Positions 16,021-24,618 of a DNA stretch of 64,000 bases are shown piece by piece; position 1 is the first letter of the stretch, and each line of letters starts with the position of its first letter. Under the pieces are notes generated by a model. That model was given only the letters and a program-made list of their open reading frames with translations, was not told where the DNA came from and made no database searches. The stretch is taken from assembly GCA_904063045.1 (NCBI GenBank), contig CAJFCJ010000016.1, positions 496,001 to 560,000 on the forward strand, read 5' to 3'. This stretch comes from Dimorphilus gyrociliatus (lineage: Eukaryota > Animalia > Annelida). The translations under genes and the position numbers were made by a program.

Positions 16021-17271
16021 TCAGATGGCGGTCAGGGCGTGACCGGCATGGTTCCATAAATGCATGTTGAAATATTTTAAATCCGCCATGTTTGTCAATC
16101 TTTCTAGGCCTACCGTTGTCATTGAAACACAACCGTAGACATCCAATGCTTTTAATCTTATCAGATATTCTGAAAGAACAATGGCGGACGCGTCTGTCAA
16201 TTTAGAACACTGTCCAATGTCCAAGGCGCGAAGTTCTATTTGAGATTTTGCAAGATTCGAGACGCCTTCGTCAGTTATTTTACACGCACTTAAACTTAAA
16301 GCTTTTAAATTGAACAGTCCCCTACTTATATGTGTTAAACAAGAGTCCGTTAGACGCTCACAAAATGCTAAATCTAAAGTTTCTATTTTGGATCCTCCCT
16401 CTACGAGGTAGCCGATTCCTGTGTCACTTACGTTGTCACAACTCCTAACGTTTAGGTGCCTAAGAGACGTAGATTTTGCAAGATACCTAAATGCTGTATC
16501 GGTTATTCCCGCGCAAAATGATATATTTAAACTGTCCAAATTCTTCAGGCAACTCAAATGCGAAAGAGCGTCATCTGTAACGCTCTGGCAGTCCTGCAGG
16601 ACTAGATCAGTCAAATTTAGGTTTCCCTTGGGTTCCAAATCGGCTGGCTGTAACCCGGAAATGTAGGATATCCCCCTGTCGGTGACCCCTTTACAGGATC
16701 TAACGTTCAATCTTTCCAACCGTTCTAAACCCACACTAATTAAAGTCAAGGCATTCGAAGTAACTTGAGAACAACCGGCTAACTCTAAAACTTTTAAATT
16801 TCTTGCGTATTGAGCAACTCTAGCAATTGAATTGTCCGTTATTTGTTTGCAGAAGGAGAGAACTAGTCTTTCTAGGAGCGGAAGTTCATGTTCCAATGCA
16901 TGTATAATAAGAGCATCAGTCACATTATAACATCCAGTTAGGTCCAAACTTTGCAGATGTAAACTGGTAATATCTCTGAGTGTTTTCCGAACGCTCAGAA
17001 CTTGAATACGCCTAATCCCTCGGCGTTCCAGTGAAGAAAATACTAAAGGATTTGTCCTCTTTAAATGCAGTCTTGCGCATGCGCCCCTCCAAACCGTTTT
17101 TCGATTACAAACTTCCCTCCAAGTCCGGCATACCTGCGCAGCACGTCCCTTATCGGCGGGGTCTAGATATGAGAAGATGTAGGATAAGATTTCGGGTAGG
17201 AGGCAGTGGATGTCCGTATCCCTCTTCCATCGTGGCCATTTTTGAAGAAGGAGTTCACCAGAATCCATCAT
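16021..17271 (-). CDS. FBXL14: F-box/LRR protein 14 (Partner of paired ortholog), intronless
   Basis: F-box DIHCLLPEILSYIFSYLDPADKGRAAQVC..W followed by KTVWRGACARLHLKRTNPLVFSSLERRGIRRIQVLS and about 11 cysteine-containing LRRs (LSFCKQITD, LQDCQSVTD, LSACKITDEG, DVYGC). Confidence 0.93.
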   Translation of the reverse strand: MMDSGELLLQKWPRWKRDTDIHCLLPEILSYIFSYLDPADKGRAAQVCRTWREVCNRKTVWRGACARLHLKRTNPLVFSSLERRGIRRIQVLSVRKTLRDITSLHLQSLDLTGCYNVTDALIIHALEHELPLLERLVLSFCKQITDNSIARVAQYARNLKVLELAGCSQVTSNALTLISVGLERLERLNVRSCKGVTDRGISYISGLQPADLEPKGNLNLTDLVLQDCQSVTDDALSHLSCLKNLDSLNISFCAGITDTAFRYLAKSTSLRHLNVRSCDNVSDTGIGYLVEGGSKIETLDLAFCERLTDSCLTHISRGLFNLKALSLSACKITDEGVSNLAKSQIELRALDIGQCSKLTDASAIVLSEYLIRLKALDVYGCVSMTTVGLERLTNMADLKYFNMHLWNHAGHALTAI

Positions 17272-17728: not shown

Positions 17729-20700
17729 ATGGCAGAGACAAAGATTATATATCATATAGAGAATGAATCAACTCCATATCTTATAAAGATACCCATACGG
17801 AGCGAAGTTATTACTCTCGGCGATTTGAAGAATGCTCTAAATAGACCCAATTATAGGTTCTTCTTTAAGGTGCCTGACGATGACTTTGGGTAAGTAGTTA
17901 AACAAAAGTACATAAACTTCAAGTCAAAGCAATTATAATTGCATTTTATTATTAAAGATTTGTTAAAGAAGAGATTGGAGATGATGGTCAAGGTTTACCT
18001 TCAATAAACGGTCGGGTTGTTACATGGGTAGGTGCTTTGAATAAAACTGCCGACTTTTTTACCGTTCTCAATTAAATATTTTAGTTGGTTACGTCAGAAA
18101 ATAGTGTTATAAACAGTCACCTAGATTGTACAGAAACAAGTAGCACAACAACTACAGCTGTATCAGAAGATCATCCTCGAAGAGGCGAAAAAATTCAAAA
18201 GTAAGATAACAGATGTCGCTGTAGTATACAGCATACAATAAGTATATATGTATGAAGGTATAACTATTAAGCAAAGTGTTCAATTTTGTTGTATGGCAGT
18301 AATAGGCAACAGGAAATTTGTTCCCTCACGTAAATTGCTTATCTAATTAATTTTTAAAGTTAATTCCTCTCCTGAAATTATAACAATAGGTTACATTTTC
18401 ACTTCCATATAGAAATATCTAGTTAACCTGAGTTTGTTAAATTTATGATGCTATACGATTAATTCATATTGTCAGGCCTATATTAAACTAGGCTTAGGAT
18501 AATTCAATCAATATTATAGACCCTCGACAAAACAGTCATTCCTGTATTTCATTGTTTAATATTTTGGAGTGATGAAAATGTCACTACAATTTGATAGTAT
18601 TAATTTTTTTATCAGTTCTTCAGTGTTTATTTTTAAAGATGGAGAAATAATTTATTTATTAGACGACTAATGTTAATACTTGCTTTCGGGAAAATAAGGA
18701 AATAAGATCTTTGAACAACTAAGTAAATTGATTTAAGCGTTGATATGTGTCATCTGTCTTGTATTTGATAAGCAGATGGCGCCATAGGCATCAGAAAATA
18801 ATCAAGTAAAGGATCTGTACAAAATTTATTTAAATATTGCACGCGCAGGCTTCTTACCCGTCGAGATTTCCAAGCAATCTCCAAACATTTCGAAATACAC
18901 TTGAGACATGAAAAAGATAAATATACATAGCAGTAATTTATCCTTGAAATAACATTGATAATTTCCTAAAAATTAACAATTATAGCAATATTTGAGTTAG
19001 ATTAGACTAAATAATACCTTTTTGATCCTTTAGCTTAAGCAGGAAAATTCGTAAGTATTACGAAGCTTTCTATACAGCTATACTTTGTCTCGTTACTGAT
19101 TTTTTTCTGCTCAATTTCATGCCTTTTATTCTCATTTTTATTGATTATTCACCACAATCGATCCTAACTAATCGCTCTTCCATTTTTTATAAAATATGTT
19201 TGTAGGCCAACCTTCAACAAAAAGCGATATTTTTGCACTTAATCGTTGTCAAGGTCATTCATTGAGCCGGTGTCGGAGTTTACTGAAGGGATATTCGACT
19301 AGCCGCAATATTCCCAAGTACCTTAACTTGTACTCACATAAAGGGCACAAACTAAGGTCTCAGGGACATTGAGACAGTCAATATTGTAGCTTTGTTCTTG
19401 TATTTTATCATTCGTACTGAGAGACCTCTAGACGTCAATGCCCTTGGGTGTGTTCTTCACCAGTTACCCGACGAAGCAAACTTGTAGATAAAACTAGACA
19501 TTTTTTTGTAAATTTTTTTTATACAAGTTCGTTACTACGGGTTTCTGGAAAAGAGCCTGTCTGGTTTTTTTTTCTAATTTTTTCATCTGGTTTCCTCTTT
19601 GCTATACATTAAAACTAGCAGAACTATGTGAACCACATAGAAATTAAGGCTACATAATACCTAGCTACAAGATCATTTTTGCTATACAAAGTGAATACTG
19701 GAAGGGGTTGCCATATTGAACGATAATTTTTTTCAGCTCTTGTTTTCTTCCGTTCTATCGGATTCTGTAAAAAAACTTCTATCACAAGCCATTAGTGTTT
19801 TATATTTTAACATAGGAATAGCTGGTAGGACAGTTAGATAGCTCATAGGGGGGATTGAACAGAGAAAGGATGCAGTACAATGAGGCTGTTTTTTGATTTT
19901 ATACGCTTGAAATTTGATTAATAGGTAGACAGCTTTACATTCAGAGACAAAAACATTTTGACATGCAATTATTTTGCGTATTTAAAAGAATTCGATATGC
20001 ATTAAAGTTATCAAGGTCATTGGTTTAGCATTTCTTCCAGTTTTTGTCCTAAAATATTAAGTTAGATTGATGTTTCTTTGCTCATTGAGGTCGTTAAGGA
20101 GACGAAAACGAAGAATGATAGAAATCTACAAAGCACCAATGACCTACTAAATTTTTTTATGATTTAATAAGAGCAGACGAACATTTTCTACAGTTTTTTT
20201 TTTGCATGGTTTGATTTATAATCATCCAACGATTTACATGGCATAATCTACTTTTAGCATATGTCAGCCTTTCAAAATGGCGATCATTTACATACATCCT
20301 ACTGTAGTTTAATACCAGCAGGTTTTTTTTTCAACGCGAGGAATGAGATAAAATTAAACGATAATTATTTATGCAACAAGCGCCTTAAACAGCCATGGTA
20401 ACGTCCATTCTTTTCTTCCCATGCCAGACGAATAAATTAAGTACAGACAGAAAATAAATGATATTAGCACATACTCTAATAACTGTTACACTAAATATAT
20501 CTATGATTACTTTTAAAATATGTACATATAAGCAAAATTATAGAAGAAATATGGTACGATGTTAAAAATGTATGTTCTTTTTCTAGAACAATTTTTTTAA
20601 TGTAAAAAAAAAAGGAATCGAATGTTTGAGTACTTATCTATTTTTTTCTTTCGATGTTACAGGATTCAGGATGTAGACTCGATAAGAGAAGGTGAGAATT

Positions 20701-23700
20701 TTCCACTATCAATCAACTAATCGATTAGTTTCGACCTTGTCTGAAAAAAAATCCTAAGTTGATTTTTTTCCAAGCCATTCTTAACTGAATTCTATTTAGA
20801 AAAGCTTTGATCTTAACTAACTATAAGTTTACTTGATAAATATCTGGTTAAATTAGACGGAATCGTGCTCTTTAGCTGGTATGGCTCTACGCTATACTTA
20901 AACCGTCTGTCTGTTAGCAAAAGATCGAGGCTGTCTGCTTCGTGGACTGGAATTTCTCGGAACCTCCCTCATTATGACGTCATTTTAGTGAACATAGATG
21001 GTGTTTGCGCCTATTCCATTTAAAAAATACATTAATAAAATGACATCTAGCGGATATCAATAAATGATTATTACTTTTTCTATTAACGTATTAATTGACA
21101 ATGAATATAAAAGATTCATAAGTTTAGAAAGAAGAATAAAGAAAAAACTCGTAGATTTCTCTGTCTAACAAAATAAATGAAATAATTTATAAGTTTTGTA
21201 TTTGTAGATGAATCGTCAAAATTTCCTGAAGATGATACGTTGGACGCAGCAGACTGCGATAGCAGCAGGTGAAGTTAATTATTAAACTTATTAATTATAA
21301 AAGAAAGGAAAAATACTATTTTTTTTGCCCTCTTCTCTTCAGTCATAAATTACAGTTAATTATTTATTGTTAAGATAATAGTAATATTATTTTTATAATA
21401 TATAGATAAAAAGAACTATTTGCTTTTAGATTATCTTCTTCAACTGCTTTCGGCAGACGTCAAAAACGCAGGAAACGTCGACGAAAAATTCCTGCGGCAT
21501 CTACATTATCGTCAATGAGCGATTCAACAATGTCTTTGAATATAGTTACAGTAACGTTAAATCTAGGTATGATAACAAAAGGAAACGCAACCGAATAGCA
21601 TTCATTATAATTCATTTAATATCTCGTTATAGATTTTGTTTAGGCTGTTAAACACTAAACTTTTCAATATCAGTTTGAATATTTTAACATGAGAAAAGGT
21701 ACTTTAATTAATCAATACTTAAAGATATACTAGACAGATGCATGAGGGAAACAAAGTGACATATTTAGCTGAAAAATAACACTATGTCTTAATATCTATA
21801 TATATATATATATAATATATTATCACGAGAACGTAATTATATATGTATTTTACGTTTCCAAGATAACTATAGCAGTATAAATATTATATATCCATATATA
21901 TATATGTATATACATATTTATATAAACGAATATTCCTTTCTCCTTTTGAATAATAGATTCTACAAAGTTTTTGGGTATAAGTGTTGTTGGACAGAGCAAC
22001 AAGGGAGATGATGGAGGAATTTACGTTGGTTCCATTATGAAAGGGTAAGAAGATATTCTTCTATTTAATGATCATTTTACAATACCATACTAAGTACTAT
22101 AATCATTAAACGAAATAGCGGTGCCGTTGCTCAAGATGCTAGAATTGAACCTGGTGATATGTTGTTAGAAGTAAACGGAAATAGTTTTGAGAAAATCAGT
22201 AATGATGAAGCTGTTAAATTACTTAGGGAAGCAGTCCATAACCCTGGGTACGTTAGAATTATATCTTATTGAAATGTATAATGAATTTCTTTGACCAATT
22301 GTCAATTTTCTGTTTTTAGACCAATTACGTTAGTTGTTGCCAAATGCTGGGATCCTGAACCAGAAAAATACTTTTCAGTACCCAGAGAGGAACCTATCCG
22401 GCCAATAGATCCAGCTGCTTGGTTAGAGCATACATCAGCGGCTCTTAATGTGAGTTGTTTATTAGATTTTATACATACAATAACAAAGTTACGTAAGAAA
22501 GGGAAATATATTAGTCCATCAAATTTACATATGCTAATTCAGCAATTTACATAGTTAACTGGTGATTTGTGTTATATTTTTTATCCTAATGGACAGAATT
22601 AATGTTGACCCTAATAAGGGTAACGTGCTAACGCTTCTATCATTTTATCGGATGATCAATGACCTTTATTAGTTGAATTATATAAGTGTAGATTTAAATT
22701 AACGATCATACTAAACTTGTTTGACTTATGAAAATTTGGCAAATGAAAATTAATGGGATGGTTAATTCAAGTTGAATTATTTGGTTTGTAAAAGAAAGAA
22801 TGAATGAATGAATGAAATAGATAAAGATGGCTTGCTTTCGTTTGTTAATAATGATTTCCTTTCTTTTTTTCACAGGTTGATAAAATGTCTCAAAGCGTTT
22901 CGACATTAGCGTCTATTCCCTCTTCTATCGCATCTGAAACAAATTTAAGTATTGAAGCTGATATGATAAGCGTTATTAAATCTATGTCACATCCCGAATC
23001 TCGTTTGAAAATGAATAGTCGTCAAGAATTTTTAGGATCTGATCTCATATCCTGGTTGTTTAGTAATGTTGAAGGTTTCGCTAGTAAAACAGACGCTAGA
23101 AAATATGCGTCTAAATTGTTAAATGCCGGATTTATACACGAAGCTGTTGATAAAGGAGAGTTTTTTGAAGGGGCTTATTACGTTTTTGCGGGTAACATCA
23201 GGTTATAATTGAATTAATGGCAATTATTAATATGTTATTAAACACCTCTGTAGAAAAACTGCCACGTAAAACGGTTTCGGAAAGACCAGTTGAATACGAA
23301 CCAATAGGTAGATTGACTCCTGCAGAATGGGCACCGCTGTATCGGCCACAGATTCCACCTCCACCAGCATCGTACGCCTCTCTAGCCGCTGCTAAGAATC
23401 GCAAATTATCTGAGGATGAAAACGGTTGTGGTAAATATCGACTTTGGCACTTTTACATAAGAAATTATTATAATATTATATAGTTAGCCTATAATATTCT
23501 TTCACGAATTCTTTATGGAATATTATATTGATAAAAACCTGTTTTTTTCCCGCTAATCTGTCAAACCCTAAGAAGGAATGTTTTATCGCCATTTTAATCG
23601 TCTATAGTAGTTTTAGTTTATTTTCTCTTCAACTTCAAAATATATAACATAAGAGAAAAAACAGAAATAAAAAGGCATAGAAATGCTTTGTATTATAAAC

Positions 23701-24404
23701 CCGCGAAGAGCACAAAGAAAATGGGTTAAAACACCTCTACTTCCTGTCTTAGTCTGCTATAATAGAGATTTTCTGTTCTCTTTCATAACTGTAAATGCGT
23801 GCTTTCATATTTTTCTTAGCTTATCCCATCAGAAAGTACGCTTTTGACGTTTTTTGACAAGACAAAATGAAAGGTCAATAGGCCTACGGTATTTTTAATT
23901 GGAAGAAGCTGAACGAATACATAAAAATATTTCGTCTATGTAAAATTGAAAAGTATAGGTAGAAGGTCGTAAGGTAATAATACCACCTATCGGTTGGTGA
24001 AAACTCCCCTTTTCAAACATTATATAAAATGTTCAATTGTAAAAAATGTTGGGTTATTTTATTCGTACTCTATTATATTTAGTTGACTATCCATACTATT
24101 TCCTTTAACCACAGCGAAGAATGGTACTGAATGCAGTAACTTTATGACGGGCCTGAGAAAAATGTTTAACAAAAAAGCAGAAAAGAAGATGAAAGCGAAG
24201 AAATTCGATGAAAAATTTTACGATTCAACTTCGTCAAGTACGTTTAGTTTTTAATTAATTAATCATATAGATCGTAATAAAAAATCAGTATTTTTTTCTA
24301 TATAATTTATTCATTCAAGTATCGTGTCAAAAACTCTGAATTCATAATAACAGTGGATCATTTCTTTCTTTTGAACAGGTGACGAAGAACAACAGAACGT
24401 TTAA
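17729..24404 (+). CDS. DVL: Dishevelled (DIX-PDZ-DEP), divergent paralog; alternative end at 23857
   Basis: [37 protein letters not shown] (17729-18028). Basic region [11 protein letters not shown] and [51 protein letters not shown]. Proline motif [40 protein letters not shown]. Intron phases checked for most junctions, including micro-exon 20663-20691. Confidence 0.93.
19307..19370 (-). ncRNA. mir-125: pre-mir-125 (lin-4 family), antisense in Dvl intron 3
   Basis: 5p arm 19366-19345 is UCCCUGAGACCUUAGUUUGUGC versus canonical UCCCUGAGACCCUAACUUGUGA (seed identical). The 3p arm ACAAGUUAAGGUACUUGGGAA pairs back to form a hairpin with a loop of about 14 nt. Confidence 0.9.
19460..19548 (-). ncRNA. 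mir-100: pre-mir-100, antisense in Dvl intron 3
   Basis: 5p arm 19543-19522 is AACCCGUAGUAACGAACUUGUA versus canonical AACCCGUAGAUCCGAACUUGUG. The 3p arm UACAAGUUUGCUUCGUCGGGU and the CCAG/CUGG basal stem pair back. It lies upstream of mir-125 on the same strand, as in the conserved cluster. Confidence 0.85.
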
Positions 24405-24618
24405 GTGTTTCATTTTTTTTTTCTTCTTTTTTTTTTAGTTTCATATAAATATAAAACATTTTATTTGTTGTCCATATACATTTACATGAAAATATAGAAT
24501 ATTTTTAGAAAATAGAAAACAAACAGGAAAAACAAATTTATAATTAAAAGGTAAAAGAGGGCGAGACGTTTTTTATGGTTTTTTCCTCTCTAGGAAACCC
24601 CTTTTCCTTTTTTATCGT

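Follow-up and report, generated by a model that had tools for sequence, protein, structure and literature searches.

A 64,000-nucleotide stretch of the genome of the annelid Dimorphilus gyrociliatus (contig CAJFCJ010000016.1, positions 496,001 to 560,000; the window) encodes a Dishevelled (Dvl) protein whose DEP domain lacks its finger. The DEP finger is both the contact to Frizzled and the hinge of a domain swap that builds the signalosome. Its length is almost invariant in the animal Dvl proteins surveyed here. We consider it very probable that a selected, finger-less Dvl paralog exists. The best explanation of the whole, to which we assign a probability of about 0.6, is a maintained second Dvl that has lost the finger, had its tail replaced and would act away from Frizzled.

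The pre-DEP linker and the whole DEP domain are encoded by exon 8 of the gene (22876-23191, + strand). This exon is a single uninterrupted open frame, is preceded by a CAG acceptor and starts VDKMSQSV. An earlier note on this DNA had located the defect correctly but ended the exon at 23190, one base short of its true end, which is in phase 1. Searches were run exon by exon. The Pfam DEP profile PF00610 matches exon 8 with 42 bits (cut-off 32.7, E 8.8e-11), covering only profile positions 18-72. In phmmer searches of all PDB chains, exon 8 is closest to the DEP domains of human DVL2 and mouse Dvl1 (E 1e-18 to 4e-16), the DVL2 chains 5lnp, 5suz, 8wm9 and 3ml6 giving E 1e-18 to 1e-16. Other DEP families score 2e-5 or worse. 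By Pfam, phmmer and the fold match given below, this is a Dvl-type DEP.

Every phmmer alignment to DVL2 or Dvl1 has one 8-residue gap, opposite MWLKITIP (DVL2 443-450). An identical gap is found in a MAFFT alignment with 42 other Dvl DEPs. Both alignments bear out the earlier claim that about 8 residues are missing. Only 10 residues separate helix 1 (PES) from helix 2 (GSD..WL), and the shortened loop lies at 23002-23031. The canonical finger is an 18-residue hairpin carrying W444-L445-K446-I447; here there is no W-L-K-I, and a polar NSRQ turn occupies its place. Because helix 1 and helix 2 share exon 8, no intron can conceal the missing residues, as the earlier note had argued. The choice of the eight missing residues varies with the alignment. 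The loop can also be aligned to LKITIPNAFLGSD without a gap on the C side, which would delete strand beta1 and keep a nominal L-K. W444 and the protruding hairpin are lost under both alignments.

Changes elsewhere in the domain were read from the MAFFT alignment. Domain swapping involves G436 and an extendable finger. The window DEP has neither: R (R43) stands at the G436 position and no M443/L445/I447 triad is present. The C-loop departs from HTVNKITFSEQCYY, consistent with the earlier description of an altered downstream segment, and near-invariant residues are replaced (H of IRHTV by E, S of FSEQ by F and C of QCYY by A). Equivalents of S418, S435, R442, E499 and Y502/Y503 are kept. The groove residues of interface II, R442 and Y502, align with R49 and Y101/Y102, respectively. 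The D460 equivalent is S, at a position that also varies among other Dvl proteins.

Finger length was compared across Dvl proteins using a HMMER search of 1.84 billion representatives. The search returned 460 matches and the best 150 of these were examined. Loop length was taken as the number of residues between P[ED]SG (helix 1 end) and GSD..WL (helix 2 start). Within this set, 70 cleanly measured Dvl DEPs, and the second Dvl copy of this genome (on contig C24), have an 18-residue loop with W-L-K almost invariant. One sequence, P0004, has 20 residues. A 10-residue loop occurs only in the window copy and in P0001, a sequence of 105 residues. Values of 4, 16, 19, 24, 39 and 40 were rejected as false anchors (fragments, intron read-through) or a clipped pattern match; some sequences with odd values visibly retain the WLK finger. 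Seven matches without a length surplus over the gap were considered as further finger-less Dvl proteins and none is a second case. On reading, P0073, P0022 and P0109 retain the finger, and fragments or intron read-through account for P0138, P0135, P0145 and P0080. Many animal Dvl fragments start exactly at GSDVVDWL after intron-like residues, which suggests that an intron directly behind the finger is widespread in animal Dvl genes. The window and C24 copies both have no intron at this point.

We used AlphaFold2, with the 43-sequence alignment, to model the window DEP; the C24 DEP was modelled by the same pipeline as a control. The core block of the window model has a predicted local distance difference test (pLDDT) score of 82-91 and there is no hairpin. 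Briefly, the model comprises a helix at residues 30-38, a short loop (39-50) containing one bridge residue, a strand at 51-53, helices at 54-64 and 71-84 and two short strands. The C24 model has a confident two-stranded finger (strands 35-39 and 42-49, pLDDT 90 or more). Foldseek superimposes the window model on the monomeric DVL2 DEP 3ml6 at 1.6 Å over 86 columns, and on the FZD4-bound DEP 8wma_C with a template modelling score of 0.79. Its matches include RGS7, RGS9, DEPTOR and DEPDC5. The window DEP is thus modelled as a folded three-helix core without a finger.

P0001 shares the short loop and is 91% identical to window exon 8. Its coding sequence lies on Logan contigs of three runs (SRR23372229, SRR23372231 and SRR23372216). 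L013, at 12.5 kb the longest of these contigs, is syntenic with the window, and the synteny extends to the F-box/leucine-rich repeat (LRR) gene upstream of Dvl. Identity to L013 is 80-95% in exons and about 50-60% in introns. L013 comes from a sister species and an independent assembly. The earlier note had named an assembly deletion as the event that would overturn it. The short loop is the same in three independent sister-species assemblies, which rules out a deletion artefact.

The ratio of non-synonymous to synonymous divergence (dN/dS) was calculated by the Nei-Gojobori method against L013. Nine exons were scored in frame; in the other two, exons 6 and 10, stretches of 44 and 38 residues, respectively, are 100% identical. 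For exon 8, encoding the DEP, dN/dS is 0.040 at a synonymous divergence (dS) of 1.15. Exon 9 gives 0.035 (dS 1.16), exon 5 gives 0.02 (dS 1.42) and exon 4 gives 0.04 (dS 0.69). Exon 7 has no non-synonymous change (dN/dS 0, dS 1.08). In exons 1 and 2, encoding the DIX domain, dN/dS is 0.11-0.14 (dS 0.14-0.33), and in exon 3 it is 0.13, with 89% amino-acid identity. The maximum in the eight non-DEP exons scored in frame is 0.14. Fifteen consecutive codons at 23002-23046 (45 nucleotides; exactly the shortened loop plus the beginning of helix 2) are nucleotide-identical in both species. This is the longest identical run in the gene (P 0.006 by codon shuffling within exon 8; weaker after correction for 10 exons) and there may be constraint at the nucleotide level.

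A tree was built from the DEP exon alone with the finger columns removed. The window copy and P0001 form a pair with support of 100/100. Their stem measures 1.38 changes per column, compared with a median tip of 0.32, and their own tips measure 0.03 and 0.08. The long stem and short tips are the pattern of rapid evolution after duplication, with constraint thereafter.

Exactly two Dvl loci are present in the genome, the window copy and that on contig C24. The C24 copy retains RDRQWLKITIPNAF. Compared with P0003, a canonical Dvl of 771 residues, it is 89% identical in DIX and 73% identical from PDZ to DEP; the match continues into the C-terminal region. Weak Dsh_C matches were found at both ends of that profile. 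From its sequence, the C24 copy is judged canonical end to end. The two-locus count and the C24 finger agree with the earlier proposal that the window gene is a Dvl paralog, and place it beside a canonical copy. PDZ through DEP of C24 is a single open frame of 246 residues (G000:C24:434957-435694; L010/L012). Three introns interrupt the corresponding interval of the window copy, 21957-23191. Because these introns fall where C24 has one exon, we ruled out that the window copy is a retrocopy of C24.

The lost residues have published roles. In the cryo-electron microscopy structure of FZD4 with DEP, W444, L445 and I447 make up the hydrophobic interface I with transmembrane helix 5, the third intracellular loop and transmembrane helix 6; K446 is at its border (PMC11369211). 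W444 also hydrogen-bonds intracellular loop 2, while R442 and Y502 contribute to interface II, the groove that holds this loop (PMC11369211). Alanine substitution of each DEP interface residue lowers signalling, and at W444, L445, K446 and I447 it abolishes activity (PMC11369211). Drosophila K417, altered in dsh1, corresponds to K446, and R413 to R442 (PMC11369211). The substitutions L445E and K446M block recruitment to FZD5 (PMC5087658). Both are inactive when stably expressed to rescue DVL triple-knockout cells, but signal if overexpressed (PMC5087658). The finger also extends into a beta-sheet that links the domain-swapped DEP dimer, and the M443/L445/I447 triad mediates tetramers (PMC5065529). 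G436P prevents both swapping and signalling (PMC5065529), and the swapped dimer is stabilised by S418 and S435 (PMC8256032).

Because, by published mutagenesis and the structure of FZD4 with DEP, the lost residues carry both the Frizzled interface and the domain-swap sheet, we infer that the window copy is uncoupled from Frizzled, and this is the best supported of our functional proposals. Judging from the DVL2 work, the window DEP could not enter Frizzled's intracellular cavity, and would probably also be unable to form the finger-derived beta-sheet of the swapped dimer. The remaining route into Wnt complexes would be DIX-DIX polymerisation with canonical Dvl and Axin. The residues that we take to form the DIX interface (following Schwarz-Romond 2007) are kept at Y27, V67 and K68, and F43 is L. 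The window copy could then tune how signalosomes assemble, by diluting or capping them. Alternatively, it could be a PDZ scaffold positioned by the new tail, with a new membrane or partner contact. The earlier proposal of an uncoupled copy that could act as a dominant-negative or scaffold is in line with the published finger mutants and the FZD4-DEP structure; that note had not remarked on the replaced C-terminal third, the strong purifying selection or the part of the lost stretch in domain swapping. That a specific Frizzled-independent mechanism operates is, in our estimate, somewhat short of an even chance. More tentative still, and rather unlikely as it stands, is the full proposal of a natural Frizzled-uncoupled Dishevelled kept as a built-in regulator via DIX co-polymerisation, or as a scaffold redirected by the lysine-rich tail.

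Several points weigh against a maintained paralog that acts away from Frizzled. Conservation is what supports its expression and exon joins, and the 3.2-kb intron may hold extra exons. Placement of the window/P0001 pair beside the C24 paralog has weak support (93/11). Equivalents of the interface and dimer residues R442, Y502, E499, S418 and S435 remain. There may be a weaker or different Frizzled contact, with the L-K pair surviving under the alternative alignment. In addition, hinge shortening can promote domain swapping in other proteins. Hence, the effect on dimerisation is uncertain.

Four other explanations can be set against this reading. The simplest is that 24 nucleotides were dropped from a normal DEP exon by an assembly or sequencing error. 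A genuine loss of this kind is a priori rare, and nothing beyond that rarity speaks for an error here. Loop length is the same in three sister-species runs, the 45 nucleotides spanning the site are identical in both species and the deletion is accompanied by many other derived substitutions. An artefact is extremely unlikely. It is also very unlikely that the gene is a decaying duplicate or pseudogene, in which finger loss is one functionless lesion among many. The DEP is indeed the most diverged domain (45% identity, compared with 69-83% for DIX exon 1 and PDZ), the C-terminal third has no detectable Dvl similarity and the stem branch is very long. However, the frame is intact across 490 codons with consistent phases, and GT-AG junctions are conserved in two species. 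Furthermore, dN/dS is 0.02-0.14 at dS of up to about 1.4, the new exon 9 is at 0.035 and the terminal branches are short.

The two other explanations accept the gene and concern its function. The short-finger DEP could still bind Frizzled, via the R442/Y502 groove, the basic helix 3 and membrane lipids, as part of an ordinary if divergent Wnt transducer. R49, Y101/Y102, E98 and several helix 3 lysines and arginines are retained, the DEP core is strongly constrained and the published interface II uses R442 and Y502 (PMC11369211). Yet W444, L445 and I447 of interface I have no counterpart, there being a polar NSRQ turn instead, and single substitutions in interface I are published to abolish recruitment. 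The C-loop has also lost near-invariant residues (H to E, S to F, C to A). We regard retained Frizzled binding as quite improbable. Only a little less improbable is a neofunctionalised DEP that, with the lysine-rich tail, binds another partner (a receptor, lipids or a nuclear target) in a pathway that is not Frizzled-proximal. Rapid early change and the strong constraint that then set in on the DEP and the new tail alike would fit, as would the complete conservation of exon 10, in which 11 of 40 residues are K/R. Other DEP families, among them the RGS7, RGS9, DEPTOR and DEPDC5 found by Foldseek, use other surfaces. Against this, no partner can be named, and the tail has neither a Pfam match nor a significant amphipathic moment. 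This explanation also overlaps that of a second Dvl acting away from Frizzled, instead of excluding it.

The window copy can be compared with known systems. It has the same order of DIX, basic region, PDZ and DEP as canonical Dvl proteins (DVL2, the C24 copy and P0003). It differs in length, being about 490 residues compared with 600-770, in having no Dsh_C region and no FFVD(I/V)M end, and in its changed C-loop (HTVNK.TFSEQC in canonical proteins). The alleles dsh1 (K417M), dshA3 (R413H), DVL2 K446M, L445E and W444A hit the same structural element. These block Frizzled recruitment and leave DIX-dependent activity on overexpression. However, they are single substitutions in sole or redundant Dvl genes, whereas the window copy is a natural 8-residue loss in a maintained extra copy. 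Dixin/Ccd1 and Axin are DIX modulators that do not bind Frizzled; they lack PDZ and DEP domains and are not paralogs of Dvl. If uncoupling is correct, the window copy would resemble them in joining Wnt signalosomes only by DIX-DIX contacts, although the protein is clearly Dvl-derived. Among nematode Dsh paralogs, Cang-mig-5 has no DEP, and DSH-1b and Asuu/Ppac dsh-1 have no DIX (Dillman et al. 2013, PMC3564985). Like the window copy, these are lineage-specific duplicates in which part of the usual architecture has been shed. Unlike it, they have lost whole domains; the window copy keeps the DEP fold and loses only the receptor-binding hairpin tip.

In the literature, we found no description of a natural, conserved finger deletion in an otherwise intact DEP, and no paper describing Dishevelled in Dimorphilus. 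Whole-domain losses and finger point mutants are already known for Dvl; a natural conserved finger deletion appears to be new. If our interpretation is true, the gene would represent a separation-of-function allele of the DEP that arose naturally. A constrained finger-less copy indicates that the scaffold of DIX, PDZ and DEP core can be selected for a role away from the receptor. Such a copy would also be a natural construct with which to separate Frizzled docking from other DEP functions. The bearing is limited to one small annelid lineage and the function is deduced; hence, we attach moderate weight to the case.

The window gene has 11 coding exons between 17729 and 24404 on the + strand (1473 nucleotides; 490 codons and a stop). 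Exons were traced by homology to the C24 locus, to P0003 and to L013. Every junction is GT-AG and is retained in L013, phases are consistent and conservation begins and ends at splice sites. Exon 1 (17729-17889) carries the start codon and the first 53 DIX codons, and its GT donor is conserved in L013. Exon 2 (17958-18027) ends DIX, with AG and GT conserved in L013. The DIX domain is recognised by Pfam (PF00778, E 1.4e-18) and by phmmer matches to the DVL2 DIX chains 6vcc and 6jck (E 2e-15). Exon 1 is 72% identical to P0003 and 76% to the C24 paralog; exon 2 is 73% identical to the C24 paralog and 53% to P0003. Exon 3 (18085-18200) is a Ser/Thr-rich linker that is open in both species and has no Pfam match. 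Exon 4 (21430-21566) encodes the basic region and the end of the Dishevelled-specific domain. We count this motif as present, exon 4 being 55-59% identical to P0003. In this single exon, PF02377 (profile positions 124-160) is below its cut-off (20.8 compared with 26.9 bits, E 5e-4).

Exons 5 to 7 encode the central PDZ domain. Exon 5 (21957-22044) starts it, with the carboxylate-binding loop FLGISVVG and partial Pfam PDZ matches. Exon 6 (22119-22247) continues it and matches PF00595 (E 2e-8). Exon 7 (22320-22449) holds the PDZ end and a conserved post-PDZ stretch (VVAKCWDP...RPIDPAAW). The PDZ exons are 69-83% identical to P0003 (exon 5 alone, 81-83%), and exon 7 is 72-74% identical to P0003 and the C24 paralog. 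Pfam, phmmer and these identities to P0003 and C24 confirm that DIX and PDZ are well kept, as first noted. The DEP of exon 8 is only 45% identical to P0003.

Exon 9 (23254-23430) follows a 61-nucleotide intron with conserved GT and AG, and encodes a lineage-specific, proline-rich C-terminal region (KLPRK...). Exon 10 (24115-24237) is a lysine-rich segment in which conservation runs from AG to GT. The coding part of exon 11 (24379-24404) ends ...SDEEQQNV with the stop TAA; the AG acceptor and stop are conserved in L013. For the Dsh_C/DSV region, neither Pfam nor BLAST against the P0003 C-terminus matched exons 9 and 10, whereas the C24 copy does match. Absence of Dsh_C is no bar to Dvl membership, because some accepted Dsh genes also have no such region (PMC3564985). 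A word search with the open reading frame containing exon 9 found a single relative, P0151 of the sister species. Word searches with the DEP exon and the exon 9 frame returned only P0001 and P0151 from that species, and no more distant ortholog. An amphipathic helix in exon 10 was considered and rejected, its hydrophobic moment being no greater than that of shuffles (P 0.32). The new tail contains the YxxPhi-like motifs YEPI and YASL, which are short enough for chance. Just past the predicted stop, about 85 nucleotides (24436-24520) are ~90% identical to the sister species and are probably a conserved element of the 3' untranslated region.

Four more DIX loci without a Dvl-type DEP are present in the genome (L003-L008; G000: C3:550407-550574, C14:467536-467860, C30:127494-128308 and C7:698880-699181). 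Three are alike, each with a two-exon DIX. The four are possibly Axin- or Dixin-like, in which case they would be partners for DIX co-polymerisation.

Two blocks within Dvl introns are also conserved. In the 3.2-kb intron, 19457-19550 (- strand) has a sub-threshold match to the Rfam mir-10 family (29.6 bits, gathering score 47.5, E 1.6e-4). It lies in a block, 19280-19520, that is 93-98% identical to the sister species. Nothing in this intron reaches the Rfam gathering score. The intronic block at 20817-21020 contains TGACGTCA and matches the sister species at about 90% identity (88-95% per 60-nucleotide bin). One of its frames stays open in both species, and it has no Dvl or Pfam similarity and no Rfam match. 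This block could be a regulatory element, an uncharacterised RNA or an unrecognised exon. Directly upstream of Dvl, 16021-17271 (- strand) is the single-exon F-box/LRR (FBXL-type) gene of 416 residues, which occupies the same place in L013.

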